IMG/VR virus record: IMGVR_UViG_3300031951_021456
Location: 124,001-188,000 of that record
Strand: one strand, 5' to 3'
DNA length: 64,000 nt
Part shown: positions 12,301-64,000 of the stretch, one piece after another
How the letters are laid out: each line of letters begins with the position of its first letter
Position numbering within the stretch: position 1 is the stretch's first letter
The notes under the pieces: generated by a model
Database searches by the model: none
What the model was told of the DNA's origin: nothing
The model's input: the letters and a program-made list of their open reading frames with translations, nothing else
Translations under genes and position numbers: made by a program

Positions 12301-15300
12301 GTAGCACATTTTCTGGTAAGCATATAGTGAGTGGAGTTGGATCTACTTCATTTTCATATATTCTTACTGCATACCCAGAACAAGAAAAATATACAGAAAA
12401 TGTTACATATACAACAACATCTAAAACTGCAACTGGACCAATAGAAAAGATATTTGTAACTTCTAAAGGCTCAAATTATAAATCTTTACCAGGAATAAGT
12501 TCAATTATTAGTGAAAATGGCTCTGGAGCCATTGTTGAAGTTAGTAGCACAACTATAGGTAAAATAAACAATGTAACTATAAATGATATTGGTTATGACT
12601 ATCCTTCAGATTTAACATTAACACCATTAACTCAAACTCCATTAGTTTTAAAAGTTATCCCTCAGTCTACATTAAAATCTATTCAAATAGTTTATCCGGG
12701 GAAAAATTACTTACAATCTCCAGATTTAATTCTACTTGATGGTCTAACTTTAAATAGAATTTTAGATGTAGATCTAAAATACGAACTTGGGGACAATGAA
12801 GTAAAAATCATAAAAAATAGTAAAGGTATTAATAACGTTACGCCAATATTAATACCAATAAACAACACAAATTCTATAAAATTAAGTTCACTTTCTTTTA
12901 ATTCGGAAACCAAAGAAGTAACAGTAACACTTTTTGAAAGTTATAGTAATTTAGATGAATTTCCAGTTAAAGTTGGGGATAGAATTTTAGTTGAAAATGT
13001 TTCTATTTTAGAAGATTCATCAGCGAGAGGGTATAATTCATCATCTTATAATTACTCTAGATTTTTAGTGACAGAAATTACTCCAAATATTGGTTTTTCT
13101 GGGGGAAATATAACATATAGTTTATCTGAATATTTGAGTGAAAATGAATATCCAGGAACTCCAGACCCAATATATGTAACTGGAACAATAACTCCTGAAT
13201 TATTTTTCCCATCATTTGTTATAAACTTATCTAAAAATATTTTTCTTGTCGGTGAGACTGTATCATCTGAAGATTCTTTTGGTATCGTTCAAGCTTGGAA
13301 TAAGGATAATGAATTGCTTACAATTTCCACGAATGATGAGTTTAAACTTGGTTCCTTGATTACAGGTTCTGGTTCATTGTCAAGCGGAAATATAGATAAT
13401 ATCTATGATTTTAAATCAAAATTTGTAGTCAAATCATCTTCAGATGTTAGAAAAGGTTGGAAAACCGAAAGGGGATTAATTGATAATGAATTTCAACATC
13501 TTCCTGATAATAATTATTATCAAACTTTCTCCTATTCTCTAAAATCTAAAATTGATTATAATACTTGGGGTAATGCTGTAAGTAGCTTAAATCACATTGC
13601 TGGATTTAAAAAATTTGCAGATCTTGAGGTTGAATCTAACGATACAAGTGAAATTAATGTAGTTCAAGAAGATTCAACTACTGATTTAATTATTACTCTA
13701 GATTCTGAAATTGATTTAAATTGTATTGATGATTTTGATCTTGTTTCTGAAAATAGTTACATTATGGATAATGATCTAAATTCAAATGTAATTTATTTTC
13801 AATCAAAAATAATTCAAGACTATTTGGAATTAGTTGGTAATAGAGTTCTACAAATTGATGATATAAGTTTAAATTTTGATGGAATTAGAACAGCATTTAA
13901 ACTAAAGTCAAATAATTTTGATATATTTTCTAGAGGATTTAACTCTTCGGATGTAGATATTATTGATAATGTTATTCATGTCAATAATCATTATTTCACA
14001 AATGGTGAAAAAGTATTCTATTCATATGAGACTTCACCAATAGGAATTAACACTACAAACATTGCGGGTATAGGGACAACAGATAAACTTCCAAATGAAG
14101 TCTATATTATTAAGCGTGGTGAGACTGATTTTAGCTTCGCTGAGAGTGCTGCAAATGCTCTACTAGCAGTACCATTATCATTAAAAATAGCAAATGTTGG
14201 TATAGGCACTTCTCATACCATAACTTCATCTAATCAAAATTCAAAAGCTTTAATTTCATTAGGAGGAGTCATACAATCTCCAATTTCTCCTACAAGTATT
14301 ATATCACAACTTTCATCTAATGTTAGTAGTTCTTCTACTACTATATTGTTGAATAATATTGAAAACTTTTCTAGTGGTTCATTTGCCAAAATAGATAATG
14401 AAGTAATTAAAATAGTTTCAATTGGAATTGGAACAAATTCTCCAATTCCAATTGAAAGAGGTCTAGTTGGAACAGCAGCAACTAATCATAATTCTAATAC
14501 TTTTGTATATAAATTATCTGGTAATTATAATATAGTTGATAACACTCTTCATTTTGTTGAACCACCTAAAGGTCCAACACCAATAGGAACCACTACAAAT
14601 TCTCCAGAAAATGTAGACTATGTTGGTATTACTACAGTTTTAGAATTTAATGGTAGAGTATTCTTAAGAAATGGCGAACCAAATGGGTTGCAAAGTGCAT
14701 ATGCAACTAATTATGTTTTTGATGATATTTCAAATAGCTTTAATGGTATAACCACATCATTTATATTAAAATCTAATGGTACTGATATTATAGGTATAGA
14801 AAATAACAATGCTTCAATATTAATTGAAGAGGTATTTCAATCACCTTCAGATTTTGCTGGAATAGTAAAAACGTATGGAGCATATACTTTAAAGGAAACC
14901 ACAGGTATCACTTCAATAAGATTTTTAAGTAGCTCTGAACCACAAGATTATGATATAAATGTATCAAATATTCCAGTTGGTGGCTCCATAGTTTCTATCG
15001 GTTTTACTTCAGGTAGTGGATTTCAACCCCTGGTTTCTGCTGGTGGAACAGTTTTAGTTTCTGCTGGTGGAACTATACAATCTATAAGTATCGGAAACAG
15101 TGGTTCAGGATACCGACCTGGGGTTCAAATAGTAAATGTTTTTGCATATGATCCTTCTAGAAATATTAATACAAATATAGGGATAGCATCAATATTTAAT
15201 GGAAACATTGTATCTGTTGCCATTACAAATCCAGGAAATGGCTATAGTATTTCAAATCCACCCATAGTTAGATTTGACGATCCAGTTCCTTATAATAATA

Positions 15301-17498
15301 TGGAACTTATATATTCCACACAACAAGATTCCAATCCACCAGAACCTCCAGTCACAGAATTAGAAGTGATTTGGACAGAAATTGAAGATGGTGGATTGAC
15401 TGATTATGTTTTGCAACCGCCGACATTTAGCTCAACCGCTACCACTAGCACGATGACCCTTTATTATGATGCAGCTTTGATAGGGGATGTCGGTAGCTTC
15501 ATTAATATTTACACTCTTAGTTATAATTGGCTTGAGTTTGGGCCGCCCTGGGACGTGACCCTGGTGGCCTCAGTTCAGCTACTGATTGATGGTCAGTCTT
15601 ATCCTGATGTGATTTTGCACGGCCTGACAGGCAGGGATCCTTATTATCTTGATCTTCTAGTGTATGATGAAAGTGGTTGGCCCGAAGTGACCAACCCTCA
15701 AACGCTCACCATTATTGTTACAGTAACGGGAGATAATATTCCTTCTCAACCTGAAAATAATACACAAACAACATCTAGTCCAGGAATTGGCACTGGAGCC
15801 AAAGTTAATGTAAAAGTTGGAATGGATTCAAATATTATTGATGTTGATGTAGTAAATAGAGGATTTGCCTTTAAACCTGGTGATATTTTGTCTATACCAA
15901 CGGGTGGAAATATTGGTATTCCAACAATTAGTTCATCATTCAATTCAGTTAAAGTTGTAGTTGATGAAATATATAATCAAAAGTTTTCTGGATGGACTTT
16001 TGGACAACTACAAATTTTTGATTCCATTGAACAACTTTTCAATGGAACTAGAAAATTATTTCCACTTAAAGTTGATAATGAATTGAAGAGTATTAGAACT
16101 AGAGTTGGTTCTCTTATAGATCTTAATTCAACATTTTTGATTTTTATTAATGGAGTTCTTCAAATTCCTGGTATAAATTATAATATATTTGGAAGCAGTT
16201 ATATTACTTTCCCAGAAGCCCCGAAATATGGGTGTTCTTGTTTGATATTATTCTATCGTGGTAACGGGGTTTCTGATGTTATAGATGTTGATGTTATATC
16301 TCCAGTAAAACCTGGAGATTCTGCACAATTAAATGATGATAATGGTTATATAGAAGATGAACGAATTATTTCTATAATATTGTCTGCAGATTCTGTTGAG
16401 ACTCTTCCTTATTCTGGCCCAAATGTTGTAGATGATATCAATTATTTAAGACCAGCTAAAATATGTTTACAGACAGAAGATATTCACATCAATAATAAGG
16501 AAGTGACCAAAGAAAGAGAAATATATGAGCCATATATTGAACCTGCAACTACTATAATAAAAACTGTTGGTATTTCTTCCAATATCATATTCGTAGAAAA
16601 TGCCAAGACTTTTTTTGATGATCAGAGAGAAAATGCAACAAATATTTATAGAAATAAACTTAAAATTGTAAGCCAAGAAGAAAATAGAGTTGCTATTGCA
16701 ACTGCTATTGTTTCAGTTGCCGGTTCAGTAACAGGAGTTTCAATCAATGATATTGGTAAAGGTTATTCCACCACTCCTATAATTTCTTTCTCAAATCCAA
16801 TTGGCTTTACAACAGAATATCGGGCTATTGCTAATGCGTCTGTATCTAATGGCTCAATAAGTTCAATTTCCATTATTTCCCCTGGTAGTAATTATTCTAA
16901 AATAATCCCTCCACAAATATTAATTAGTAATCCAGTAAATAAATTTGAGAATGTTACTGCAACATCCATTACAGGTGATTTTGGATTGATCAGTGGTATA
17001 GCAACAACCACAGTCGGAATTGCTTCTAGTGCCATATCATTTAATCTCTTTATTCCATTAGATTCTCCATTGAGAAATTCCAGTATAGTTGGATCTTCAA
17101 CAACCATCAGTGGAATTCAGCCGGGTTATTATTTTACTGTCAAAAATACTTTTATTGGCAATGGAATAATTACTCTAGAAGATGAAGGTTCAATACTATC
17201 CATTGGGACAAGTTGTTTAGATAATATCTATAAGGTTGCTTCAGTATCTGTAGGACAAACTTATGTAAGTGGTATAGGTTTAACTGCAGTTGCAAATGTT
17301 ATCGCAACTGTTTCCAATAATAATATAGTTGGTGTAGGCTTAACAAAAATTTATGGAACCTATAGTTGGGGTAGAATTGTAACACAGCCCAGAAATAGTA
17401 ATAATGAATTTGTTGTCTATAATACTGGTATTTCGGGTCTCAGTAGTGCACCCATAATTAAAAGAATCAATTCTCTTAAAAGCAAAAACTATTCATAA
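6387..17498 (+). CDS. gp7: Giant baseplate wedge initiator (gp7-like) structural protein
   Basis: N-term QFPEFLRDE and FYTTKGTDTSFQILFNALYG; HSPILGWAYDGNPIYGPYG module; repeated GxGY beta modules; position between gp6 and gp8. Confidence 0.75.
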   Translation: MKVKISSIVDNQFPEFLRDESPLLVEFIKQYFISQEVKGASIDLITNLDEYTKVENLTNQIETTTLLEDISFDDSVIFVNSTNGFPDTYGLLKIDSEIITYTAKTETTFTGCVRGFSGIYNDQFEFTVTESSSHITGAIVENLSIIFLQKFLEKIKNQLIPGFQGREFTENLNQTNFIQKSKGFYTTKGTDTSFQILFNALYGEPVKVLRPSDYLFTPSSAEYRVSKDLVVEALFGDPLLLENGTLFQDDQNGNNIAKGSISKVEQILRGEKIYYVISLDYDFNKDINVSGSVFGEFYIHAKTKITSDVFADSDIIDVDSTVGFQKSGSLLINNEVISYTNKSLTQFLGCTNITQNYLKGVDVINNDFAYGYSRNNAIAVRVSGVINSFKEIESANNLNVGDTIRIKSLGKTSSDIRTKNWLYNLPVSYEVKSIVLLDLTSNKYELETFDENIINAGDYIDIVYKNGSIISTSILSRINERAFVIQGQNSLELSNINYIERRISKANFSNFPEISSTSTNVQNVYSNDEDVFVAASSIPNYFSDSITITDGSLKITENITGFSISKENHGFLTGDVVVYNFTGNNNHLGISKGTYYIKRNSNDSISLSTSRANLVSNSLIKFSGSAIGGQSTLEYNDFSSKSLKNQKLIRKIPAKTLANESIETPIGNIGIFNNGVEICNYKSKDVVFYGPVQSLDVVSPGLDYDVINPPLIITTDPIASGLIANCEIKGYLKEIRILDRGLDFTEEPSVQITGGNGEGARAKVELGSFEHYATFESSNILNNVISFTKYHGFKTAEKIIYKPDGISRVIGITTDSEYFASSVTDFSIKLYKTYDDAISGINTISISYNGYAKHRLISSQPKTKISDIVITSSGKNYTNRKISVLSSGITTTNNTINRTDHGFKTGEKIVYESYSGTPIGGISTNTPYFVTAEKDSFKLSKVAEVGIATSQDFYFRTNQYVNLTSSGIGTHYFNYEPIKVELTNISGIGTTNTSLMAKIQPIFRGEITSVSVVNGGEKYGQEDILNYNRQPNISIFSGSGAIAQAIVSGGKIAQILIIDPGSGYYAPPEIVVSGTGKNAKLVPVIQSGQLIDVIIINPGYGYDSRNITLTVFAAGSGGQLRTNAKQWTINKIERLFQSRKISPDDGILTNSINSNYELEYVHGYAPRKLRQILTSTKYVSGSLVYQPDLALSNNIEISSNAHSPILGWAYDGNPIYGPYGFDKESGGAIRYMKSGYKLIIDQINRPSNSLYAEGIFVEDFTFLGDGDLDAHNGRFCITPEFPNGTYAYFSTIDGNEVQSVGLFANFFKPVFPYFIGKTYKSTPSSFNFNYQSNQDDIDLNKTDWLRNTSPFKLNSSHSGYNYLFKPFDVIEQTANINSIIAGSVDNIIVKSGGTNYKINDRIVFQNDNSNGNGARAIVSEIKGKKISEVSIASTTFYDVEFATVSQKGIIGVSTIPINFNSGDIISISNVNRNRKLLEKSFIISVPNNDLILNKDVDVVALSGITTYFNVYGDLSATTIRENDIYQIDAEKVKILNVEENSSRIFVERCIGGTVGAYHTTGSLLLEIPRRFNLENTNNQDFSDPIFNREIYFKPAESIGVGVGSTITFSNPGIGITNIFIPSRSIYLPQHNLKTGEKLTYKLNGGSNFVVSTNGITTSFLPNNSTVYVAKYSDNFIGLSTEKVGIGSTGMFVGYNTTSAANILYYHSFGSGDKHSLATNYSSTIGQVDKNIALVYTTANPELLKNDTVNVLAEPTILKTVKVLYNSYRKLLLLRPRSIIGANVDTTKNTIKIPNHNYFTGQKLLYSSDNPINGLKNNELYYVVVKNSITISLCESFYDSQLEEPNVIKLLSQNGGIFSEVNPQIRITKNQSLAFDLSDPSLSTLEGSELVSAFDFRLFFDGNFNNEFKTTFTNSTFNVTKVGRIGIDYTAKLILSYDSNISDLYYNLIPLKTLDVIVDRDNNQSNNTISYTSSTFSGKHIVSGVGSTSFSYILTAYPEQEKYTENVTYTTTSKTATGPIEKIFVTSKGSNYKSLPGISSIISENGSGAIVEVSSTTIGKINNVTINDIGYDYPSDLTLTPLTQTPLVLKVIPQSTLKSIQIVYPGKNYLQSPDLILLDGLTLNRILDVDLKYELGDNEVKIIKNSKGINNVTPILIPINNTNSIKLSSLSFNSETKEVTVTLFESYSNLDEFPVKVGDRILVENVSILEDSSARGYNSSSYNYSRFLVTEITPNIGFSGGNITYSLSEYLSENEYPGTPDPIYVTGTITPELFFPSFVINLSKNIFLVGETVSSEDSFGIVQAWNKDNELLTISTNDEFKLGSLITGSGSLSSGNIDNIYDFKSKFVVKSSSDVRKGWKTERGLIDNEFQHLPDNNYYQTFSYSLKSKIDYNTWGNAVSSLNHIAGFKKFADLEVESNDTSEINVVQEDSTTDLIITLDSEIDLNCIDDFDLVSENSYIMDNDLNSNVIYFQSKIIQDYLELVGNRVLQIDDISLNFDGIRTAFKLKSNNFDIFSRGFNSSDVDIIDNVIHVNNHYFTNGEKVFYSYETSPIGINTTNIAGIGTTDKLPNEVYIIKRGETDFSFAESAANALLAVPLSLKIANVGIGTSHTITSSNQNSKALISLGGVIQSPISPTSIISQLSSNVSSSSTTILLNNIENFSSGSFAKIDNEVIKIVSIGIGTNSPIPIERGLVGTAATNHNSNTFVYKLSGNYNIVDNTLHFVEPPKGPTPIGTTTNSPENVDYVGITTVLEFNGRVFLRNGEPNGLQSAYATNYVFDDISNSFNGITTSFILKSNGTDIIGIENNNASILIEEVFQSPSDFAGIVKTYGAYTLKETTGITSIRFLSSSEPQDYDINVSNIPVGGSIVSIGFTSGSGFQPLVSAGGTVLVSAGGTIQSISIGNSGSGYRPGVQIVNVFAYDPSRNINTNIGIASIFNGNIVSVAITNPGNGYSISNPPIVRFDDPVPYNNMELIYSTQQDSNPPEPPVTELEVIWTEIEDGGLTDYVLQPPTFSSTATTSTMTLYYDAALIGDVGSFINIYTLSYNWLEFGPPWDVTLVASVQLLIDGQSYPDVILHGLTGRDPYYLDLLVYDESGWPEVTNPQTLTIIVTVTGDNIPSQPENNTQTTSSPGIGTGAKVNVKVGMDSNIIDVDVVNRGFAFKPGDILSIPTGGNIGIPTISSSFNSVKVVVDEIYNQKFSGWTFGQLQIFDSIEQLFNGTRKLFPLKVDNELKSIRTRVGSLIDLNSTFLIFINGVLQIPGINYNIFGSSYITFPEAPKYGCSCLILFYRGNGVSDVIDVDVISPVKPGDSAQLNDDNGYIEDERIISIILSADSVETLPYSGPNVVDDINYLRPAKICLQTEDIHINNKEVTKEREIYEPYIEPATTIIKTVGISSNIIFVENAKTFFDDQRENATNIYRNKLKIVSQEENRVAIATAIVSVAGSVTGVSINDIGKGYSTTPIISFSNPIGFTTEYRAIANASVSNGSISSISIISPGSNYSKIIPPQILISNPVNKFENVTATSITGDFGLISGIATTTVGIASSAISFNLFIPLDSPLRNSSIVGSSTTISGIQPGYYFTVKNTFIGNGIITLEDEGSILSIGTSCLDNIYKVASVSVGQTYVSGIGLTAVANVIATVSNNNIVGVGLTKIYGTYSWGRIVTQPRNSNNEFVVYNTGISGLSSAPIIKRINSLKSKNYS

Positions 17499-19069: not shown

Positions 19070-22000
19070 ATGCCACAGGAAACAAATCTTAATATTACTC
19101 CATATAATGATGATTATAGTCAGGCTAATGCTTACTATAAAATTTTATTTAAGCCAAATCCTGTTCAGGCGAGAGAATTAAATAATCTCCAATCAATTTT
19201 ACAAAATCAAATTGAGCAATTTGGAAATCATATTTTTAAAGAAGGTTCGGTTGTAATACCTGGAAATTTAGATTATGATGATGACTTAAGTGCAGTTGAG
19301 CTTCAAAATACATACAATGGCATTTCAATTATATCATATTTACAACTATTAGAAGGTAAGACACTTAAAGGTAAAAATAGTGGGGTTACAGCTACTGTTG
19401 TTTTAGTTCAAACCCAGAATGAATCAATACGTGGTAATAGCACAATTTATGTAAAATATATAAACTCTAGTATGGAAACTGGAGTAAGTTCTTTATTTGC
19501 AGATGGTGAAGAGTTAATTGTTGAAGAATCTGCAGTTAATACATTATCCACTGGAGAAACTGTAATTTTTACATCTGGTCAAACTGTAGCTGCAACTATT
19601 TCTAGTAACTGTAACTCTATTGCTAGTTCTATTACAGTTTTTGATGGTATCTATTTCGTTAGGGGAACTTTTGTAAACGTTTTCAAACATACAATAATTC
19701 TTGACCAATATTCAAATAAAGCTTCATTTAGAGTTGGATTTAACATAAATGAAAAAATTATAACTGCATATGATGATCCAGGACTATTTGATAATTCTTC
19801 TGGGTTTTCCAATTATACTGCTCCTGGAGCAGACAGATTTTCATTTGAATTGATTTTAGCTAAGTATGATCTGAATGAAGAGAAACCTAGCAATTTTGTG
19901 CAACTCCTAGAAATTCAAAAAGGTGTTTTAATTTCTAATCAAAATATTCCAGAATATAACACATTAGCCAAAGAGCTTGCAAGAAGAACCTTCAATGAGT
20001 CTGGAAATTATTATGTAAATTCTCCAACAATTTCAATTAACAATTCATTAAATGATCTGTTGGGTAATAATGGAATTTATGATTTAGGTGAATTTACATA
20101 TGATGGAAATACACCATCGGATGATTTAGGAATCTATAAAATTTCTCCAATAAGTGCATTCGTTCAGGGTTATGAAATTAATACTGGAGTTAAACTCATT
20201 GATTTCCAAAAACCTAGAACTAAAAAATATCTTGAAAACCAAGAAGTTAATTATTATACCGGACCAACTTTAACTCTTAATAGAGTATATGGGTCTCCTT
20301 TTGTGGGAATTTCAACAAACTATACTTTAAGTCTGAGAGATACTAGAGTTGGAGTTTCACAAATTATTGCTCCTGGTAAAGAGATTGGATTGGCTAGGGT
20401 TTATGATTTTGCATTAGAATCTGGCTCATATTCTAATACTAATGCTAATATAAATGAGTGGGATATTTCTCTTTTTGATATTCAAACTTATACAGAGATT
20501 GCCTTAAATCAAAATCTCAATAATGATTTACTCTACAATATTCCATGTAAAATTGAAGGTTCTTCAAGTGGAGCTAGTGGATTTATTCGCTATGATTCAA
20601 GAAATATTGGTATTTTAACAGCCTATGATATTAATGGTTCATTTATTGTTGGTGAAAGATTAAAATTTAATGGTATTGAAAACTCAAGAGTTTCTATAGC
20701 TGTAACTTCATATTCTCTGGATGATGTAAAAGCTGTTTATGGTATTGTTGGAACTGCTTTTACATTTACGGCTGATGTTAAACAAGTTCCCAAAAAAACT
20801 ATAGGGCAAGTCAATATTACTCAATCTACTGGAATTTCAACAGTAACTAATTCTACTAGCATTTTTACTGATAATGCAAAACTTGGGAATCTAGTTTCTT
20901 TTACAACACCTGGAATTTCTACTGTAAACTATGCAACTATTACTGGGATTTCCCCCAATTCTCTTACAATTTCTGGTGTTACTACTGTTATTGGAATTTG
21001 TGAAGGAAAACTTCCAAATTTAACAATAAATCCTACTGATTTTGCTATTTTAGCAGCATCTAGTAGTCGCTCTCAGGATAATACTTTATATACTAAATTA
21101 CCCAAAGATAAGGTGAGTGATGTAAATCTAACAAATTCTAATATCACTATAAGAAAACAATTTGATGTTGTAATTTCTGCAAATTCAATTGGGCCAATTA
21201 ATTCTGAAAATGATGAAACATTTTTACCATTTGATGAAGAGCGATATGCACTAATTAGGGAAGATGGTAATACAGAAGCACTATCCACAGATAAATTTGT
21301 CTACACAAATGGTTCAAAATCTTTAACAATTAATGGGTTGGGAACATCAACAAAAGCAAAGCTAATAGCGTCTCTTAGAAAGATAAATGTAAGAGAAAAG
21401 GTAAAATATAAAAATAGAATTCAGACCATAATTATTGACAAATCTAGCTACAGTAGTTCTGGAATAGGAACTACAACTATTAACGATGGTCTAATATATG
21501 GAAACTATCCTTATGGGACTAGAGTTCAAGATGTTGAATTATGTCTTTTATCACCAGATGTGACAAAAATTTATGGTATTTTTGAGTCTTCAACTATAAA
21601 TTCAGCAAGTCTTCCATCTCTTAATTTATCATCAATGAGTGGTCCAACAAATAAAGTTGATGATCTCCTCATTGGTGAAAGAATTATAGGAAATACATCA
21701 GAATGCGTTGCAATATACACTAAAAAAAGTAATGATTTAGAGATTAACATTACATTTTTAAATTCCTCGCGTTTTCTTATTGGTGAGATAGTTACATTTC
21801 AAGAATCTGGTATAACAGCAAAAATTAATGCAATTTCCTTAGGTGACCGAGACATTACAACACATTATTCATTTGAGACAAATCAAAAATCTACAATATA
21901 TGATTATAGTAAACTAATAAGAAAGCCAGATAAAAAGGAGCCAACTAGAAAATTGACTGTAGTATATGAATCTGCATCGTTTTTAACTTCAGATGTTGGT

Positions 22001-24031
22001 GACATTATTACAATAAATTCATATAATAATTTTGATTATTGTGAATTGCCAAATGTAGATGGCATAAGTGTTTCGGATATTATTGATATTAGACCAAGAG
22101 TTTCAAATTTCACTCCCGTTGAAAATTCTAGATCTCCATTTGAATTTCTCGGTAGAAGTTTTTCATTAGATTACTTAAATCCCAAAAATATTTTAGCTTC
22201 TGATGAGTCTCTAAATTTAGGATATTCATTTTATTTACCTAGAATTGATAAATTATTTTTAACTTCAGAAGGAAATATTGAATTAATTTCAGGATATCCT
22301 AGTGAAACTCCACTATCGCCACAGTCTTTAGAAAATTCTATTGAAATTGCTACAATTAAATTACCTGCATATTTGTGTAATACATTAGATGGTCAAATTG
22401 ATCTTAAAATGTATAAGCGCTATCGGATGGAGGATATTAAAATTCTTGAAGATAGAATTTCTAACTTAGAATATTACACATCTTTGACCCTTCTTGAATC
22501 CGATACATCTAAATTATTCATCCCTGATAGTTTTGGTAATAATAGATTTAAGTCTGGGTTTTTCGTGGATAACTTTTCTACTACAATACCACAAAATAAA
22601 TTAGCTATTTTTAAAAATAGCATTGATATAACTGAAGGGGAGCTTCGCCCAACACCATTTACAACACACTTAGATTTAATTATAGCGACAAAATCAATTA
22701 TTGGCGTAGGAACTATTGCAGAAACAAATATTGATTTGCGTTTTAATGATGATTTATTGGGAACCAATGTTAAAAAAACTGGTAATCTTATTACATTAGA
22801 TTATGATCAAGTTGTTGAAATAACTCAACCATATTCAACTAGGGTTGAAAGTGTCTCTTCTTATAGAAGTAATATTTTTAGTGGGTCTCTCACGCTATAT
22901 CCATCAACAGATGTTTGGGCAGATCAAGTAAAGGTTTCAACGAATTATGTTGCAGCTAAAACTTTAGTAGCAACCCCCGAACAATTAGCAATAGCTCAGG
23001 CAAATTCGCAAAATGGTATGAATCCAGTCTTATGGGATCATGTTTCAAAAATTTGGACCGAAGGAAACACATTAATTAGTAGTCAAATTATTAATTATAT
23101 TCGTTCAAGAAATATTGAATTTGTTGGCAAAAGATTGAAACCATTTACGAAATTTTATGTATTTTTTGACAATAGGTCATTAGAAAAGTATATAATCCCC
23201 AAACTTATTGAAATTCAAATGGTATCTGGAACTTTCCAAGTTGGCGAGACTGTTATTGGCACAAATACATTAACAGGAGCGGCAATTAAATTTAGGACTG
23301 CCTCTAGCAATCACAAATATGGCCCCTATAATTCCCCAGAAACTATTTTTTCTATTAATCCATATTCACCTACAAATAACATTGCAGCCAATTATTCATC
23401 AACCTCCACTATTTTAAATGTTGATACTTTCAGTTTATCTAATATAGTTCAAAGTAGCTTTTCGGGTTATATTGATAGTGGTATGAGATTAAAGGGGCAA
23501 ACATCAAATGCAGAAGCAATCATTAAATCCGATATTAAACTGATAACAGATAATGTTGGGGATATTATTGGTTCTATTTTCATACCCAATGGTACTCCTA
23601 GTTTTGAGACTGGAAGCAAATTAGTTAAAATAACAAATAATTCAACTAACTCTACAGTAATTGGAGATGCAATTTCCTTTGCTGAAACTAATTTTATATC
23701 TTCTGGTAGTCTTAACAAATATCAGGAAAATATTGTTGGAACGGATCCACGGTCAGTTGTAACTCCAACTACACCAAATATAAGACCAGCTCCACCCACA
23801 GGAAGTCCACAAGTTCAAGTACAAAAGCCATGGCAAGATGGAGATATCTCAGTTAGGGGGAGTAATGTTTCAGATGACGAAGGAAATCGTTTAGTCAATA
23901 GCATAAATCAAAAGAATGATACTTCTTTCTCATTATCACAATTAAAAAGCGCTGCAGGTATAAATCAATTAAATAAAGTATCTGAGCTTAATAGAATAAA
24001 TGAAGCTGCAAGACGCTTAGCAGGAAGATAA
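19070..24031 (+). CDS. VrlC/DUF4815-like large virion structural protein, N-terminal part
   Basis: MPQETNLNITPYNDD, VQARELNNLQSILQNQIEQFG, YTAPGADR, RFKSGFFVDNF, YIRSRNIEF motifs. Confidence 0.8.
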   Translation: MPQETNLNITPYNDDYSQANAYYKILFKPNPVQARELNNLQSILQNQIEQFGNHIFKEGSVVIPGNLDYDDDLSAVELQNTYNGISIISYLQLLEGKTLKGKNSGVTATVVLVQTQNESIRGNSTIYVKYINSSMETGVSSLFADGEELIVEESAVNTLSTGETVIFTSGQTVAATISSNCNSIASSITVFDGIYFVRGTFVNVFKHTIILDQYSNKASFRVGFNINEKIITAYDDPGLFDNSSGFSNYTAPGADRFSFELILAKYDLNEEKPSNFVQLLEIQKGVLISNQNIPEYNTLAKELARRTFNESGNYYVNSPTISINNSLNDLLGNNGIYDLGEFTYDGNTPSDDLGIYKISPISAFVQGYEINTGVKLIDFQKPRTKKYLENQEVNYYTGPTLTLNRVYGSPFVGISTNYTLSLRDTRVGVSQIIAPGKEIGLARVYDFALESGSYSNTNANINEWDISLFDIQTYTEIALNQNLNNDLLYNIPCKIEGSSSGASGFIRYDSRNIGILTAYDINGSFIVGERLKFNGIENSRVSIAVTSYSLDDVKAVYGIVGTAFTFTADVKQVPKKTIGQVNITQSTGISTVTNSTSIFTDNAKLGNLVSFTTPGISTVNYATITGISPNSLTISGVTTVIGICEGKLPNLTINPTDFAILAASSSRSQDNTLYTKLPKDKVSDVNLTNSNITIRKQFDVVISANSIGPINSENDETFLPFDEERYALIREDGNTEALSTDKFVYTNGSKSLTINGLGTSTKAKLIASLRKINVREKVKYKNRIQTIIIDKSSYSSSGIGTTTINDGLIYGNYPYGTRVQDVELCLLSPDVTKIYGIFESSTINSASLPSLNLSSMSGPTNKVDDLLIGERIIGNTSECVAIYTKKSNDLEINITFLNSSRFLIGEIVTFQESGITAKINAISLGDRDITTHYSFETNQKSTIYDYSKLIRKPDKKEPTRKLTVVYESASFLTSDVGDIITINSYNNFDYCELPNVDGISVSDIIDIRPRVSNFTPVENSRSPFEFLGRSFSLDYLNPKNILASDESLNLGYSFYLPRIDKLFLTSEGNIELISGYPSETPLSPQSLENSIEIATIKLPAYLCNTLDGQIDLKMYKRYRMEDIKILEDRISNLEYYTSLTLLESDTSKLFIPDSFGNNRFKSGFFVDNFSTTIPQNKLAIFKNSIDITEGELRPTPFTTHLDLIIATKSIIGVGTIAETNIDLRFNDDLLGTNVKKTGNLITLDYDQVVEITQPYSTRVESVSSYRSNIFSGSLTLYPSTDVWADQVKVSTNYVAAKTLVATPEQLAIAQANSQNGMNPVLWDHVSKIWTEGNTLISSQIINYIRSRNIEFVGKRLKPFTKFYVFFDNRSLEKYIIPKLIEIQMVSGTFQVGETVIGTNTLTGAAIKFRTASSNHKYGPYNSPETIFSINPYSPTNNIAANYSSTSTILNVDTFSLSNIVQSSFSGYIDSGMRLKGQTSNAEAIIKSDIKLITDNVGDIIGSIFIPNGTPSFETGSKLVKITNNSTNSTVIGDAISFAETNFISSGSLNKYQENIVGTDPRSVVTPTTPNIRPAPPTGSPQVQVQKPWQDGDISVRGSNVSDDEGNRLVNSINQKNDTSFSLSQLKSAAGINQLNKVSELNRINEAARRLAGR

Positions 24032-48901: not shown

Positions 48902-48927
48902 AGAGGGCATCAAAAGCCCTCTTTTTT
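48902..48927 (+). terminator. Intrinsic terminator after gp23
   Basis: AGAGGGC-atcaaaa-GCCCTCT followed by a T run. Confidence 0.85.
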
Positions 48928-49711
48928 ATTGGCTTTCAACTTTTCTACATTTGTATCCTTTATGGTGATTCCTTCTCCCAGCAGCTACAGAATACATTTT
49001 AGATCTACTAATATTTTTAGTAATACAGTATTCTGATAAATTTATCACAAATTCTTCAGTACCTTCTGGCGTTATAACTATCCATTCTTTTTGTTTGGAC
49101 TCAATATTTTTTCTTAATATATCCTCTTGCAAATTATATTCTCTAAGTTTTTGTTTTGTTTCTTCTTTAACATATCTACCCCTAGCTTTTTCTCTAATTT
49201 TTTGTCTATGCTCTTCAGTTTTTGGTTTACCTCTATTAGCTTCACTTATTAATCTTTTTGATTTTTCTGAATGCTTTTTACCAGTATTTAATTTTGAAAG
49301 TTTACGTTTAGTTTCTTCACTATGTTTTTTACCATAAAACCCATTTCGTTCCCCAAGCATCCTTTCAGGTCTATTAGCAATAAAAATATTAAGAAGAGTT
49401 CCACCTTCATCAAATCCAATTCTACCATATTTAATAATTTCTTGTTCTTCAAGATTATAGGCATCCTCTTCCCTTAAATCTACACTTATTTTAATAACCA
49501 TGGGTTCAATACCAGATGCTCTAAGATTTTTAATATGTCCTGTTAATCTTTTATTTTTGGTATAGCCAGCAGCAGGAGTTAAATGTTGAAAACATCTTGG
49601 TCCTTTACCTTTACCTACATAAAAAGGTGTTCCTTTTATAGGATTAATAATATGATAGACATAATAAACTGGGCATTCATCGTAATTATTTTCTTTTTCT
49701 TTTTTAAACAT
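48926..49711 (-). CDS. Free-standing GIY-YIG homing endonuclease with NUMOD3 repeats
   Basis: YYVYHIINP...FYVGKG...R...E...LLN catalytic module; repeats GKKHSEETKRKLS, GKKHSEKSKRLIS, KPKTEEHRQKI. Confidence 0.85.
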   Translation of the reverse strand: MFKKEKENNYDECPVYYVYHIINPIKGTPFYVGKGKGPRCFQHLTPAAGYTKNKRLTGHIKNLRASGIEPMVIKISVDLREEDAYNLEEQEIIKYGRIGFDEGGTLLNIFIANRPERMLGERNGFYGKKHSEETKRKLSKLNTGKKHSEKSKRLISEANRGKPKTEEHRQKIREKARGRYVKEETKQKLREYNLQEDILRKNIESKQKEWIVITPEGTEEFVINLSEYCITKNISRSKMYSVAAGRRNHHKGYKCRKVESQ

Positions 49712-49870: not shown

Positions 49871-50806
49871 ATGAATGTTTTATCTCTTTTTGATAGTATT
49901 AGTTGTGGTCAAGTTGCTTTAGAAAGAGCAAAAATAAAGGTTGACAAATACTATGCAAGTGAAATTGAACCAATGGCAATTAAAGTCACTCAACATAATT
50001 TTCCAAATACAATTCAGTTAGGTGACATAAGAAACTTAAATGTAACTGATAAGATTGATTTAATTATTGGTGGTTCACCTTGTCAGTCTTTTTCATTTGG
50101 TGGCACTAAAACAGGAATGATTACAGAAGAGAAAATTGAGATCACAAATTTAGAACAATATCTTAGTCTCAAAGAAAACAATTTTCAGTTCAATGGTCAG
50201 TCTTATCTTTTTTAGGAATATGTAAGATTGATTAAAGAACTTAAGCCCACTTATTTTTTACTTGAAAACGTAAAGATGCAAAATAAGTGGAAGGTTATTA
50301 TAACAAATTCATTAGGAGTGAAACCAATATTAATAAACAGCAAATTAGTTTCAGCTCAATCAAGAGAAAGATTGTATTGGACAAATATTCCAGATATAAC
50401 ACAACCAGAAGATTCTGAGATTTATCTGGAATCAATTCTACAAAATGACACTGTTCACAAATATTTACCAAAAACTAGACTTGATTATAGTAACTACAAC
50501 AAGTCTAAAGTAAATAAAACGGTACATAAAAATACTGGTATTCATATTGGAAGCAGCAGAAAATTCACAAATCACTTAAGAAATGATGGAAAGTCATTTA
50601 CTTTAAGAAAAGTAAACCCAAATGGAATATTAGATGAAAATTTTAATATTCGCTACTTTACTCCAATAGAAGCTGAGAGACTACAAACTCTTTCTGATAA
50701 TTATACTCTTGTTGATAATGCCACAAATAGTAAGAGATATGAACTAATAGGAAATGGTTGGACTGTTGATGTCATTGCTCATATTTTTAAGAATATTAAT
50801 CAATAA
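49871..50806 (+). pseudogene. C5-cytosine DNA methyltransferase interrupted by in-frame TAG at 50213-50215
   Basis: Motif IV GGSPCQSFS, motif VI LLENV, motif VIII AQSRERLYW, motif X IGNGWTV; the two track ORFs are in one frame: GQSYLF*EYVRLIKE. Confidence 0.85.
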
Positions 50807-54367: not shown

Positions 54368-54637
54368 TTAAACATATCCATTCTCTTTTAAGTAATCTTC
54401 TTCTAAATCGTTTAAATAATTATCAAAAGGCTCCTTACATTTAGTGGAAGCATATAACATATTGTTCATTTTATACCAGCCCAAATTTAGGATATACCAA
54501 AATGTTGCATTATATCCATCATAATATACTAAACCTTCTGGATCACTCTCAAGACCCCATTTTATAGTTTCAACTGGACATTCCATATGATTTTTCCAAT
54601 AATCAAAAATCATTTTAGTTAAATTAATTTTATTCAT
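54368..54637 (-). CDS. Hypothetical protein
   Basis: ORF track; ATGA overlap. Confidence 0.6.
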   Translation of the reverse strand: MNKINLTKMIFDYWKNHMECPVETIKWGLESDPEGLVYYDGYNATFWYILNLGWYKMNNMLYASTKCKEPFDNYLNDLEEDYLKENGYV

Positions 54638-54990
54638 AGTTTTAAAAATAAAGGAAGAAAGTTCAATGTCTCAAGTTTATGTGAGCCGATGAGATCAAAG
54701 GTTGCATAAGCTTCAGCAAAAGTACAAGTAGCTGTAACAGATTTATCTACATATAGATGGCTTATAGTATCTCTAGCAGCTTTCCAAGAAAGAGCTTTTT
54801 GTGAACCGTCGTGGGATGCATGATAGCTCATAAAAATTGTTTTACACTCTTCAACGCTCAAAGTGTCCAAATAAATCCAGAAGTTCAGAACATCTTTCCA
54901 ATTGGGACCTAGAAAATATTCAGGGTATTCTAGAGCAGTTTGGTCATCTAAATGATCTGCAAAATTTTGATGTGCTTTAGAGATTTTCAT
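54634..54990 (-). CDS. Tandem paralog 3 of PExFLGPNW family
   Basis: MKISKAHQ...FLGPNWKDVLNFWIYLDTLS...LIGSHKLE...FLPLFL. Confidence 0.85.
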   Translation of the reverse strand: MKISKAHQNFADHLDDQTALEYPEYFLGPNWKDVLNFWIYLDTLSVEECKTIFMSYHASHDGSQKALSWKAARDTISHLYVDKSVTATCTFAEAYATFDLIGSHKLETLNFLPLFLKL

Positions 54991-55379
54991 GGATTTAAAA
55001 ACAAAGGAAGAAACGTAAAGGTCTCTAGATTATGAGAACCAATGAGTTCAAGGGTTGCATATACACATGTAACTCCTACACTTGCAGGAATGCATGTAAG
55101 TGTAGGAGTTACAACCCAAGCTGCAGTTGCATATACATAATAATAACATATATTATCTCTAGCAGCTTTCCGGGTAAGACTCTTTAAGGTATCCACCCTT
55201 CCTAAAGCACAATAACGCTTACCAACTATATCAAAATCTTCGCGACTCAAAGTATCCAAATAGAGCCAGAAGTTCAAAACATCCTTCCAATTAGGTCCTA
55301 AGAAAGGTTCGGGGTATTCTAGAGCATTTTGGTTATCTAAATGATCGGCAAATATTTGATGTGCTTTAGAGATTTTCAT
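54987..55379 (-). CDS. Tandem paralog 2 of PExFLGPNW family
   Basis: Same conserved termini, different middle. Confidence 0.85.
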   Translation of the reverse strand: MKISKAHQIFADHLDNQNALEYPEPFLGPNWKDVLNFWLYLDTLSREDFDIVGKRYCALGRVDTLKSLTRKAARDNICYYYVYATAAWVVTPTLTCIPASVGVTCVYATLELIGSHNLETFTFLPLFLNP

Positions 55380-55759
55380 GGATTTAGAAACAAAGGAAGA
55401 AATGTAAAGGCCTCTAGATTATGAGAACCAATGAGTTCACTGGTTGCATGACCAGATGCATATACAGTTCCTAATTGATATGTAGAGTCAGCACGCCAAG
55501 CTTCATATGCATAATACTTACATATAGTAGCTTCAGCAGCTTCCCAAGCATTGTTTATAGCAGAAACTCTAGAATCTGCGTCTAAAGCCCAATAACGAAC
55601 ATAATTTAATCTAAAATCTTCTTCACTCAAAGTATCCAAATAAAACCAAAAGTTCAATACATTCTTCCAATTGGGTCCTAGAAAATGTTCAGGGTATTCT
55701 AGAGCGGTTTGGTCATTTAAGCGATCTGCAAATCGTTGATGTGTTTTAGAGATTTTCAT
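55376..55759 (-). CDS. Tandem paralog 1 of PExFLGPNW family
   Basis: Same conserved termini, different middle. Confidence 0.85.
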   Translation of the reverse strand: MKISKTHQRFADRLNDQTALEYPEHFLGPNWKNVLNFWFYLDTLSEEDFRLNYVRYWALDADSRVSAINNAWEAAEATICKYYAYEAWRADSTYQLGTVYASGHATSELIGSHNLEAFTFLPLFLNP

Positions 55760-58875: not shown

Positions 58876-59292
58876 TCATAATTTGTTGTTATATAGCCAT
58901 TTACATCCCATATTTGATTGGTCAATGATTCTCCTCATATTTACAGATTTAATTCCTTCTTTCATTATGCTATGTATTTCTTTGATCACACCAGTATTAA
59001 GAGAATAAATCATATCATCAGTTTGAATAACGACTCCAGGGCAGAAATCTGTATCTCCAACATTTTCAACTTTTAAAAACTGTAAAAGGTAATCTAAGCG
59101 GCTGGTGTCCATATTAGGAATTGGCTCTATCAATAAAACTGCACATCTAGCAGCCTTCCAGCCATCAATAATTCTATCGTTGGCACATAAGCCATCTGAC
59201 AATTGTTTCAACCATTGAGACATCTCGTATCTCTCTTCTGGCGAGCCTGGTTCTGGACTTGTCCCCCAACCCTGCCATTTTTTATCATTCAT
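58876..59292 (-). CDS. Hypothetical protein
   Basis: Start revised to ATG 59292 with AAGGAG RBS, downstream of promoter C. Confidence 0.6.
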   Translation of the reverse strand: MNDKKWQGWGTSPEPGSPEERYEMSQWLKQLSDGLCANDRIIDGWKAARCAVLLIEPIPNMDTSRLDYLLQFLKVENVGDTDFCPGVVIQTDDMIYSLNTGVIKEIHSIMKEGIKSVNMRRIIDQSNMGCKWLYNNKL

Positions 59293-59316
59293 ACCAAAAT
59301 TCTCCTTGTTTTCAAC

Positions 59317-59375
59317 AGCATAAAGCAAAAGCACACTCAAAGTAAGTTGAAGTGTGCCAGTCTTTTAAGTGTCTT
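59317..59375 (-). promoter_or_regulatory. Dyad-motif promoter C (AAGACACTTAAAAGACTGGCACA-N30-TATGCT)
   Basis: 30 nt spacing; motif abuts the aspS stop codon. Confidence 0.65.
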
Positions 59376-61137
59376 AAGTATTTTTAACTTTCAGTTCTTT
59401 AAGTTGGGATTCATCTACTGTTGATGGAGCATTTATAAGTAAACATCTAGATTGCTGAGTTTTTGGAAATGCAATGACATCTCTTATAGATTCTTCTTCA
59501 GCTAAAAGCATCACCATTCTATCAAGCCCAAATGCTATTCCTCCATGTGGTGGAGTCCCCATATCCAAAGCATCTAAAAGAAATCCGAATTGTTGTTCAA
59601 TTTCTTCCTCAGTAAGACCAATAAATTCAAAAACTCTTCTTTGTAAATTTGAATCATGTATTCTTAAAGAACCTCCACCAAGCTCAATACCATTCAATAC
59701 TAAATCATATGCTTTTGCAATAGACTCAGAATTAATAGAACTTTCATCCGAAATGCCACAGAAAGGATGATGTAAAGCTTTTAAATGACCATTAGTTTCA
59801 TCTTGTTCAAACATTGGAAAATCTATAACCCATAAAAATCTTGGTTCGTTTTCAGGACTTATGAGATTAAGTTCTCTTGCCAAATATTGACGAAGCTGTC
59901 CTAAAGATTTATTTACAACATTTAAAGTTCCTGCTGCAAATAGAATTAATGTTCCTGGTGCTGCTTCAGTTCTTTTTAACAACTCAAGTTTAATCTCATC
60001 AGATAAGTTATCTTTAATTGCCCCAATTGTGTCAACCTCTCCATTGTCTCTTACTCTAATAAAGGCAAGACCAGAACCACCAGAGGATTGAACTTCACTA
60101 AAAATATCACCTCCAGGTTTAATTCTTACATTGCTGATTAAATTATTACCATTGGGAATGGATATACATTTTACAACTCCACCATTTTGAATTGCACTAG
60201 AGAAAATTTTAAATCCAAAATCAACAAATAAATCGCTCATGTTGATTAGTTTTAAATCATATCTAAGATCAGGCTTATCCGAACCATACTGATCCATAGC
60301 TTCATTCCAAGTCATTCTCTGAAATGGTAAGTCTAATTTAATTCCTTTAATAGAAAGCCAAATTTGTTGAATAAGCCTTTCATTTAATTCAAGAATTTCA
60401 TCTTGAGTCATGAAGCTCATTTCCATATCTAATTGAGTAAATTCTGGCTGCCTATCAGAACGAGGATCTTCATCTCTGAAACATTTAGCGATCTGATAAT
60501 ATTTCTCAAATCCACCAGTCATCAGTAATTGTTTAAAGATTTGAGGTGATTGTGGTAACCCAAACCACTCTCCTTCATGCATTCTACTAGGAACCAAATA
60601 GTCTCTAGCACCTCCTTTTGTAGAGCGAATAAGAATTGGAGTTTCAATCTCAATAAAACCTACATTTTCAAGAAAATTGCGAATAGTCTTTGCAGTTTCA
60701 TGGCGAATAAGAAGATTTCGGGTCATGTTCTCTCGCCTTAAGTCAAGATACCGATGTTTCAATCTTATCTCATCTCTTACAATTTCTTGACCAGAAACTG
60801 AAAAAGGAAGAATTGATTTTATAGAATTTAGAACAACAATATCTTGAATATCTATTTCAATTTTTCCGGTATATATCTTCTCATTAACTGATTCTTGGGG
60901 TCTTTCTTTTACGACCCCACAAACTTGAATGACCGTTTCTTCTTTTAGTTGTTCAGCAATTGAAAATAAGTTTTCTCCAATTTCAGGGCTAACTGTTAGT
61001 TGAACAATTCCAGAACGATCCCTAAGATCAATGAATATAAAACCACCATGATCTCTTCGGCTATGAACCCACCCACAAAGTTTAACCTTTTGGTTAATTT
61101 CTTCAGAACATAATTGACCGCAATGATGACTTCTCAT
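59374..61137 (-). CDS. aspS: Aspartyl-tRNA synthetase, bacterial type with GAD insertion (587 aa)
   Basis: MRSHHCG...[24 protein letters not shown]-fold; motif 1 [10 protein letters not shown]; [10 protein letters not shown]; [13 protein letters not shown]; motif 2 [18 protein letters not shown]; HHPF; GGGSLRIH; motif 3 [10 protein letters not shown]. Confidence 0.96.
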
Positions 61138-61231
61138 TTGATTTTTGTTTGTTAATTCCACTAAAGTATATTTAAATGAAATTTTTTCTACTGGTAGAAG
61201 TGGTTGAATATTAATATCAACTAATAAGTTT

Positions 61232-61963
61232 TTATCCATTTTTTCTACAACTTTGAATTTCATTGATAAATTTGTTAATAGCTAACTCAGCCCAATTTTC
61301 TGCACATGTTCTTATCATTCCAATAATAGAATTATTATCCTCATGATATGTTATACTATAGCACCTATCCTGCTCACCCCATTTTACTCTATGTGGAACA
61401 CCATCTTCACACTCAACTTCAAATCTTATTGATTCTACCATTTTATTAAATCTCTCATAAGTCCAGGTTGAAAGACTTTTGGTAACCTTTAAATCATAAT
61501 AGTTATCTTCGTATCCATAAACGCCGGGAATAAAAACTCTCTCATTTACTACTTCTAGTGTTTCGTTTTTATATTTACTTTTCCCATAAATCGTCTCAGC
61601 AAGAGATTTATATAAATGAAACCATCCAGATTCATGGAGATATGTTCCTAAATCAAAAGAAAAAATATAATCTTTACCTAAAATGTGATCATTATCGGGA
61701 TAAATACTAATACTAAATCGTCTCCCATCATATTTGTGTTCATCATCTAGTAATAGAAGTTTTCCCCACCACTTAGTCTTAAATAAAAATAGTAGATCTA
61801 AAGAAACATAAAACTTAAATAAAAACGGTAAACAAATGTTGAATGTTATAGTTTTTTCATTGTCATTTTCTAGAATAAGGTTAAGTGCAAACTCATCCTT
61901 TGCTCTATAAACTTCAAAATTAATTGAGTTTCTGTAGTTATTAGAATAAAATGTTTTTCTCAT
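61232..61963 (-). CDS. Hypothetical protein
   Basis: ORF track, 243 aa, aromatic-rich. Confidence 0.6.
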
Positions 61964-63661: not shown

Positions 63662-64000
63662 TCAATTAGGGATTTTAATAAGATCTTCTCTGAGACATGT
63701 AAGAACTTGACCAAGCCAATTGGTTCCTCTCCAGTTTTTAGGGTCTTGAATGCCTACTGCACCTTCAGCCATTCCAATTCCCCAAACAGTATCGGTTGGA
63801 GATGCCTCAACCAAATAATGATCTACAGTGTTCATAAGATATTCAAAGGCATTTTTATCTTGAGTGAACTTATAAAAACAACCTTCATAGACAATTTGAC
63901 GAGCATGTGTTCGCCAAACTTGCAAATCAAAATTTTTCAATGTTCTCCCTAGTTCTTTTTGTTGTCTTGGATGTTTCTGTCTCATAATAGTTTGAGCACT
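63662..64000 (-). CDS. NADAR (YbiA/DUF1768) family ADP-ribosyl hydrolase, 5' part outside window
   Basis: QKELGR...KFTQ...LVEASPTDTVWGIG...WRGTNWLGQVL; frame is open to the window edge (SAQTIMRQKH). Confidence 0.88.
   Translation of the reverse strand, partial: SAQTIMRQKHPRQQKELGRTLKNFDLQVWRTHARQIVYEGCFYKFTQDKNAFEYLMNTVDHYLVEASPTDTVWGIGMAEGAVGIQDPKNWRGTNWLGQVLTCLREDLIKIPN

Follow-up and report, generated by a model that had tools for sequence, protein, structure and literature searches.

An aspartyl-tRNA synthetase gene of picocyanobacterial ancestry in a freshwater T4-like cyanomyovirus

Why would a phage keep an aspartyl-tRNA synthetase (AspRS) of its own, from where did it obtain the gene, and what would the enzyme contribute during infection? 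These questions are raised by aspS, a gene in the 64,000-nt stretch of DNA analyzed here (positions 124,001–188,000 of the IMG/VR record IMGVR_UViG_3300031951_021456; hereinafter the window, whose positions are used throughout unless stated otherwise). Its carrier is a ~250-kb T4-like cyanomyovirus that presumably infects freshwater picocyanobacteria. The reading we favor, with a probability of about 0.6, is that the gene was captured once from a picocyanobacterium and specifies a working AspRS, which adds aspartylation capacity within a phage-encoded translation kit. Statements on gene content beyond the window pertain to the ~222 of 249.5 kb (89%) that were read in overlapping stretches of ~10 kb on the JGI record Ga0315903_10000023 and on IMGVR_UViG_3300031951_021456; the remaining 27.3 kb correspond to positions 193,299–220,645 of the former.

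The aspS gene and its phage carrier

Pfam and NCBIfam profiles, alignments and the translation concur with a preliminary description, made from the sequence alone, in recovering a full-length AspRS with an anticodon-binding OB-fold, motifs 1–3, the HH pair and the GAD insertion (Table 1). The product scores 796 and 755 bits against NCBIfam aspS equivalogs with cut-offs of 443 and 374 bits, respectively (the bacterial-type, class IIb AspRS corresponding to TIGR00459/PRK00476). It aligns over its full length with the Escherichia coli AspRS (1C0A; E = 2e-161) and the non-discriminating AspRS (ND-AspRS) of Pseudomonas aeruginosa (4WJ3; E = 6e-158). On the minus strand the uninterrupted ORF extends over 59374..61263, i.e., 629 aa counted from the first ATG. 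We consider the start at 61137 (MRSHHCGQL) the better gene model because the upstream codons overlap the preceding gene, by 32 nt, and are missing from the 587-aa copy of a second phage (see below). This start coincides with the canonical AspRS N-terminus, equals the call for the second copy and leaves a gap of 94 nt to the upstream gene; the extension is probably not translated. With a GC content of 33.6%, aspS is AT-rich like its flanks (31.4%), as had been stated, and like the window as a whole (33.2%). Its immediate neighbors are ORFans common to related phages, and a scan for promoters and terminators around it gave none above shuffled expectation.

T4 core genes for structure and replication occur in the carrier, and their sequences are of the cyanophage type. 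The T4-type virion module in the window comprises gp6, a gp7-like protein of 3703 aa, neck, sheath-stabilizer and gp13/14/15-like proteins, TerL, sheath, tube, portal, prohead protease, scaffold and the major capsid protein. The major capsid and portal proteins are 75% and 70% identical, respectively, to those of Synechococcus phages B3/B23, with other cyanomyoviruses at 63–74%. The genome further codes for the T4-type replication and recombination proteins gp43, UvsX, gp41, gp44/62/45, gp46, UvsW/Y, gp59, gp32, RegA, NrdAB and ThyX. No DNA-level match to the window was found among GenBank phages.

The first objection to such a gene is that it might not belong to the phage at all, the contig being an assembly chimera or contaminated with the AspRS of a low-GC bacterium. 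Such suspicion has precedents, as several AspRS matches in GenBank "phage" records, among them those of MaAM05 and Acinetobacter MD-2021a, prove to be bacterial DNA. Against it, the exact protein is encoded on at least 13 independently called contigs from different samples (JGI and Logan assemblies), always with the same neighbors; six of these fall in the 0.2–1 Mb class and the two with listed lengths measure 249,543 and 249,342 bp. Three IMG/VR contigs carry the gene. Both junctions are contained in a 3.4-kb stretch that is complete in five runs, each from a different study (metagenomes labelled fungus or freshwater), and partially present in lake-water, freshwater and estuary runs from 2019–2025, and single contigs of two studies span aspS and both flanks with zero differences. 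Moreover, the second phage carries aspS at a syntenic site, and the nearest cellular relative is just 64% identical, far from the near-identity to a low-GC bacterium that the preliminary description had named as the mark of a contaminant. With identical junctions recurring on these contigs and in freshwater data from several studies, a chimera is ruled out and we reject this objection, to which we assign a negligible likelihood; the gene is phage-borne and complete, as originally supposed. GenBank "phage" AspRS were not counted as relatives, their best matches being host-contaminated unannotated records or lying among bacterial genes. As a separate observation, in MW495066.1 (Microcystis phage MaAM05, 223.9–233.7 kb) and CAKLQH020000002.1 (Acinetobacter phage MD-2021a) aspS lies among typical bacterial genes (coaE, sasA, sigE, nikR; cardiolipin synthase, btuB, rmlACD), and the DNA in question looks bacterial.

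Ancestry and active site of the phage enzyme

In a search of 5.8 billion proteins, the sole cluster closer to the phage AspRS (68% identity) than the picocyanobacterial enzymes (61–64%) was P0002, the product of the second phage mentioned above. It is encoded on a 23-kb contig alongside UvsW, UvsY, a DNA ligase and an RNA ligase; this contig has many small genes in common with the window at 44–75% identity, and downstream of aspS the two have their genes in collinear order. In phylogenetic trees the two phage proteins group together (SH-aLRT 100; 99 in a second tree) on a long stem of 0.66, and their clade is nested within the picocyanobacterial one (99), to which other cyanobacteria are sister. 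The phage enzymes agree with those of Cyanobium, Synechococcus and Prochlorococcus in domain order, length, catalytic motifs and the anticodon-domain residues His30 (RRDHGG) and Glu82 (RPxES); both differ from them in a 2-aa deletion, a ~10-aa deletion and the loss of the acidic C-terminal tail, in addition to the active-site changes considered below. The GC content at third codon positions (GC3) of the phage gene is 0.18, i.e., fully ameliorated, against up to 0.95 in the hosts (the value for Vulcanococcus). A third viral AspRS, from L109 (IMGVR_UViG_3300044591_002420, a 125-kb contig with a GC content of 36% that has several genes in common with the window phage), is 57% identical and joins the pair with weaker support (88), while the AspRS of huge phages in IMG/VR constitute a separate deep clade. 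The best reading of these data is that the gene was captured once, long ago, from the Prochlorococcus/Synechococcus/Cyanobium lineage and has since been inherited vertically in phages, in line with the earlier proposal of a long-resident, host-derived gene. Viral AspRS are indeed as uncommon as had been presumed, occurring at 29 loci among 2.9 million IMG/VR contigs. Among these, only the window lineage combines the cyanobacterial type with the altered active-site lid. No AspRS or tyrosyl-tRNA synthetase (TyrRS) like those described here was found in the cultured cyanophages of the GenBank phage set.

Between the phage copies of aspS, the ratio of nonsynonymous to synonymous divergence (dN/dS) amounts to 0.20 over the full length (dN 0.24; dS 1.2, which is near saturation). 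While aspS is nucleotide-identical in L002–L006, a strain variant, from run X8 only, differs at 15 codons synonymously and at 6 nonsynonymously. The low ratio and the synonymous excess together show that aspS is under purifying selection. The residues of the anticodon domain (R28, D29, F35, Q46, E94) are the same in phage and host AspRS, and those binding aspartate and ATP (QSPQ, K202, R221, D237, HH456/457, R492, R540) are retained.

The anticodon domain also bears on which tRNAs the enzyme might charge. The histidine, which corresponds to H31 of P. aeruginosa, was reportedly described by Bernard et al. in 2006 as the anticodon-domain marker of non-discriminating AspRS, and the second marker lies at what we take to be the equivalent of P. 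aeruginosa G83. The preliminary description had pointed to the His in RRDHGG as the ND-AspRS state and to the Glu in RPQESVN as cyanobacterial-like, and the alignments support both observations. His30 aligns with the His of 4WJ3, where the discriminating E. coli enzyme has Leu; at the second marker Glu82 is identical in all picocyanobacterial relatives, whereas P. aeruginosa has Gly. Thus, the phage AspRS resembles the P. aeruginosa enzyme of the transamidosome (4WJ3/4WJ4) in being of the bacterial type with a GAD domain and the His30 equivalent, but differs in having Glu for Gly and in that its presumed activity on tRNAAsn would be exerted in the absence of a phage GatCAB partner, no gatCAB having been found in the part of the genome read. 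Because its anticodon domain is in the same state as that of the hosts, the phage enzyme probably treats tRNAAsn as the host enzyme does, and we infer that it is probably non-discriminating, as had been suggested.

The catalytic domain tells a more complicated story. We compared the phage proteins across 145 columns that are nearly invariant in 197 cellular AspRS (118 picocyanobacterial and 79 from diverse bacteria). The window protein departs from the consensus at eight of these and P0002 at 11, as compared to medians of zero in picocyanobacteria and one in diverse bacteria. Six departures are common to both phage enzymes (R65K, P174K/S, E175G, L225P, A354G, A563S). As a result, the flipping loop has changed from PEGA to KGGA in the window protein and SGGA in P0002 (TKGGA and TSGGA in full), and the motif-2 loop from DEDLR to DEDPR in both. 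The earlier statement that the gene has no lesions accordingly holds for disabling ones but overlooked these two loops; the predicted enzyme appears intact, yet with a rebuilt active-site lid. The Glu of this AspRS loop, which reads PEGA in E. coli, binds aspartate or aspartyl-adenylate at the α-amino group; the loop itself closes the site and later anchors A76 (PMC12262901). The phage enzymes lack the canonical T/S-P-E-G-A form, while all other viral AspRS in IMG/VR, including that of L109 with its intact PEG loop, retain the Glu. A pseudo-enzyme was at first entertained as an explanation, but this was tempered by the observation that 12 of the 150 representatives of 50%-identity clusters also lack the Glu, mostly as TPGGA. 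Since these include cellular AspRS from Planctomycetota and Coprothermobacter metagenome-assembled genomes, on contigs of 130–500 kb, T/S-P-E-G-A is a conserved feature rather than an absolute criterion of the family, and the loss, though rare, is evidently compatible with a cellular AspRS. It is probably tolerated, the phage AspRS is probably an active enzyme, and its kinetics or inhibitor sensitivity may differ.

This last possibility prompts the question of whether the altered loops are themselves the benefit. Replacement of P174/E175 and L225 in both phages, where other viral AspRS keep the Glu, could reduce sensitivity to mimics of aspartyl-adenylate, so that translation would continue with the host AspRS poisoned. 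Variation in the flipping loop has been put forward as the reason why enzymes differ in how strongly adenylate mimics inhibit them (PMC12262901), and some Synechococcus have microcin-C-like clusters whose product is a toxic, non-hydrolysable aspartyl-adenylate (PMC4010828). Such a bypass enzyme is nevertheless a wholly inferential proposal: residue 174 is Lys in one phage and Ser in the other, as expected under relaxed constraint rather than for a designed pocket, the E→G change also occurs in ordinary cellular AspRS, and with it the true intermediate, too, would be bound less tightly. We regard it as very improbable. The same departures (eight of the 145 columns) and the long stem might instead point away from translation, to a synthetase-like protein with weakened canonical activity that serves, for instance, as a donor of aspartyl-tRNA for non-ribosomal transfer or as a regulatory RNA-binding protein. 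The Mom system of phage Mu, which uses Gly-tRNA, offers a precedent for phage chemistry dependent on aminoacyl-tRNA (PMC13219725). Retention of all domains and of the anticodon-recognition and Asp/ATP-binding residues, constraint along the full length, and the lack of an apparent partner transferase near aspS all speak for a conventional enzyme, and we deem a role outside translation quite improbable.

The translation kit and the supply of charged tRNA

The preliminary description saw no other bacterial genes nearby, which is true locally; elsewhere the genome codes for a TyrRS, EF-Ts, the peptidyl-tRNA hydrolase Pth2, a CCA-adding-like enzyme and RNA ligases (Table 1). The TyrRS has as its nearest annotated phage homologs (~26% identity) proteins of enterobacterial jumbo phages of Yersinia and Erwinia. 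Just 1.5 kb downstream of it, an RNA ligase gene is immediately followed by one for a CCA-adding/PolyA_pol family protein, a pair that looks like a tRNA repair module; a second RNA ligase is also present in the genome. The four phage tRNAs, none of which lies within the window, are Arg(TCT), Gly(TCC) and two with the anticodon CAT, reading AGA, GGA and AUG, respectively, and perhaps AUA: one of the CAT tRNAs may be an AUA-reading tRNA-Ile2, as the related phage L105 has a tRNA-Ile(TAT) nearby. Neither a tRNA-Asp nor a tRNA-Asn was found in the part of the genome read, where the earlier suggestion that the enzyme may charge phage tRNAs thus finds no support; a metagenome scan returned relatives but not this genome.

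We prefer the supply of charged tRNA as the explanation because it accounts for the whole kit. Under this model, an ancestor of the T4-like cyanomyovirus group would have acquired the picocyanobacterial aspS once, and its descendants would have retained it. During infection the AspRS would supply Asp-tRNAAsp and probably also Asp-tRNAAsn, which the host GatCAB would turn into Asn-tRNAAsn. The kit as a whole (AspRS, TyrRS, four tRNAs, EF-Ts, Pth2, CCA-adding-like enzyme and RNA ligases) would aid translation of a 33%-GC phage in a GC-rich host. Composition is consistent with such a demand. Relative to a Vulcanococcus sample, the proteins of the window are enriched in Asn (7.4 vs 2.5%), Tyr (4.6 vs 1.8%), Lys (6.2 vs 2.9%) and Ile (8.5 vs 4.1%), with Asn reaching ~9% in two giant structural proteins, which bears out the earlier remark on Asn-rich virion proteins. 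In fold terms Asn and Tyr rise most, and these are the amino acids to which the two synthetases correspond, provided that the AspRS serves Asn. The presence of a lysyl-tRNA synthetase (LysRS) in addition to AspRS in L109, a more distant phage, likewise counts in favor of supply.

Several points weigh against the supply model. Asp itself is used equally (5.7% in the phage, 5.6% in the host sample), which leaves the demand argument dependent on the putative charging of tRNAAsn; the sample, moreover, comprises ~2,000 residues of Vulcanococcus, a presumed host. The argument from Asn additionally assumes an indirect Asn pathway in the host, and the status of asparaginyl-tRNA synthetase in picocyanobacteria is its weakest link. 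As no phage gatCAB was found, the phage would not raise amidation capacity. The syntenic relative L105 (IMGVR_UViG_3300042560_001323, 243 kb) carries a tRNA-Asp(GTC) and the above tRNA-Ile(TAT) in the corresponding region and had no match in the AspRS alignment scan, making aspS dispensable in the lineage; relatives may thus solve the same problem with a tRNA in place of a synthetase. None of the 197 cellular AspRS departs from Pro174 or Glu175, and Leu225 is almost as constant; the replacement of all three in both phages could lower or alter activity. Finally, no listed RNA run contains the gene.

The main rival to the supply model is counter-defense. According to this proposal, AspRS, TyrRS, the two RNA ligases and the CCA-adding-like enzyme would restore charged tRNAs after the action of tRNA-directed toxins. 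The adversaries would be host nucleases acting on anticodons or acceptor ends, or other such toxins, all of them abortive-infection effectors of a type that strikes tRNAs of the queuosine family (those for Asp, Asn, Tyr and His), and the phage enzymes would re-seal, re-tail and quickly recharge their victims or substitute for a disabled host synthetase, the last being a toxin bypass that the preliminary description had also envisaged. The tRNAs with GUN anticodons, i.e., the queuosine family, are precisely those four, and Asp, Tyr and, via a non-discriminating AspRS, Asn would make up three of them. Proximity offers further support: the RNA ligase and the CCA-adding-family protein follow TyrRS within less than 2 kb, in the second phage 1.1 kb separates AspRS from an RNA ligase upstream of it, and in L109 one lies ~0.9 kb upstream, in a co-oriented series of LysRS, metallophosphatase, an ORF, RNA ligase, an ORF and AspRS. 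Against the proposal, some 60 kb separate AspRS from the closer of the two RNA ligases in the window phage, and such ligases are common in T4-like phages with or without synthetases. No Pnkp healing kinase/phosphatase was identified in the phage genome, a synthetase cannot repair a cleaved tRNA, and we know of no tRNA-directed nuclease or toxin in these hosts. On balance we consider counter-defense unlikely. More speculative, and unlikely too, is a combination in which the rebuilt lid and motif-2 loop, retained under purifying selection in two phages, are adaptive: the phage AspRS would charge tRNAAsp and tRNAAsn under attack by microcin-C-type mimics from picocyanobacteria or by tRNA-directed abortive-infection toxins and, with TyrRS, the RNA ligases and the CCA-adding-like enzyme, form an anti-defense translation-rescue module. 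If this were true, cyanophages would possess a module dedicated to that purpose.

Comparable features are known from other phages. In huge phages, with genomes above 200 kb, synthetases related to those of the host occur alongside tRNAs, a CCA-adding enzyme, elongation factors and tRNA ligases, a set whose proposed function is to keep translation going or to divert it (Al-Shayeb et al. 2020, PMC7162821). The window phage has a comparable combination, but unlike the huge-phage clades it has a classical T4 core, only two synthetases and four tRNAs, and the huge-phage AspRS retain the PEG loop. T4-like cyanophages, for their part, compensate for codon usage by means of tRNAs for AT-rich codons in a GC-rich host, as would be the case here with Arg-TCT, Gly-TCC and CAT. 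In contrast to the cultured cyanomyoviruses of the GenBank phage set, where we found no such case, compensation would in this phage reach the charging step via AspRS and TyrRS. Synthetase kits of phages being already known, the novelty lies in the carrier, a classical freshwater T4-like cyanomyovirus, and in this particular aspS; the gain is incremental rather than conceptual. Still, cyanomyoviruses are a model for auxiliary metabolic genes, and a synthetase was until now absent from their known repertoire. Here a classical T4-like phage whose size, 250 kb, lies at the end of the range is starting to build a huge-phage-like translation kit, in a genome that recurs in lakes sampled in 2019, 2024 and 2025. 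Further, the host and phage enzymes, at 64% identity, make a tractable pair for distinguishing supply mismatch from counter-defense and for gauging the worth of the flipping-loop Glu.

Locus features and further observations

Table 1. Coordinates of aspS, its domains and motifs, its neighbors and the translation-related genes; plain numbers are window positions, and a prefix names the sequence to which the numbers after it belong
Feature	Coordinates	Strand	Basis or remark
aspS, bacterial-type aspartyl-tRNA synthetase, 587 aa	59374..61137 (including stop)	(-)	ORF; Pfam/NCBIfam; end-to-end alignment with 1C0A, 4WJ3
In-frame upstream extension, 42 codons from first ATG	61138..61263	(-)	overlaps 3′ end of upstream gene; second phage copy without it
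OB-fold anticodon-binding domain (tRNA_anti-codon, PF01336)	60829..61086	(-)	75 bits; includes His30 (61048-61050) and Glu82 (60892-60894)
Class II catalytic core (tRNA-synt_2, PF00152)	59455..60774	(-)	393 bits; motifs 1-3
Motif 1 (LPQSPQ)	60538-60573	(-)	translation
Motif 2, Leu225→Pro in loop	60412..60483	(-)	translation, conservation comparison
Motif 3	59503-59544	(-)	translation
HH pair, HH456/457	59767-59772	(-)	translation
GAD insertion domain (PF02938), bacterial-type marker	59902..60204	(-)	Pfam, 59.8 bits (cut-off 23.4)
Flipping loop TKGGA (cellular form T-P-E-G-A)	60607..60621	(-)	conservation comparison
Upstream phage ORFan, 243 aa, co-oriented	61232..61963	(-)	53% homologue in second AspRS phage
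Downstream phage ORFan, co-oriented	58876..59340	(-)	ORF list; no family match in family search
TyrRS, outside window	L135:13716-14864 (Ga0315903_10000023 ~234.4-235.5 kb)		TIGR00234, 330 bits
RNA ligase (178 aa), then CCA-adding/PolyA_pol family protein (254 aa)	L135:16365-17675		PF09414 (RNA ligase)
Pth2 (archaeal/eukaryal type) beside EF-Ts (199 aa)	L101:16044-17306		Pth2 111 bits; EF-Ts TIGR00116, 167 bits, N-terminal part best
Four phage tRNAs	L101:6490-6564, L101:7867-7938, L103:12054-12123, L103:15259-15333		
tRNA-Asp(GTC) of related phage	L105:2099-2173		
LysRS to AspRS series of related phage	L109:4450-11755		

Further genes of the window deserve brief mention. The two giant virion proteins are encoded on the plus strand at 6387-17498 (3703 aa, with a match to the YHYH domain) and 19070-24031 (1653 aa), and consist of ~9% Asn and ~11% Ser. 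Directly after the major capsid gene, on the opposite strand, lies a gene for a GIY-YIG/NUMOD-type homing endonuclease (48926-49711, minus strand). A C5 cytosine DNA methylase is apparently split in two ORFs (192 aa and 114 aa in the JGI calls), at 50228-50806 on the plus strand plus the adjacent upstream ORF. A ~125-aa domain of unknown function is present as three paralogues in tandem at 54634-55759 on the minus strand; the second AspRS phage (L001) has many more copies of this domain, some doubled within one ORF or fused to a DNA-ligase-OB protein. A NADAR-domain protein is encoded at 63662-63985 on the minus strand and runs past the window end (172 aa on the full contig), with aspS co-oriented five genes downstream of it.

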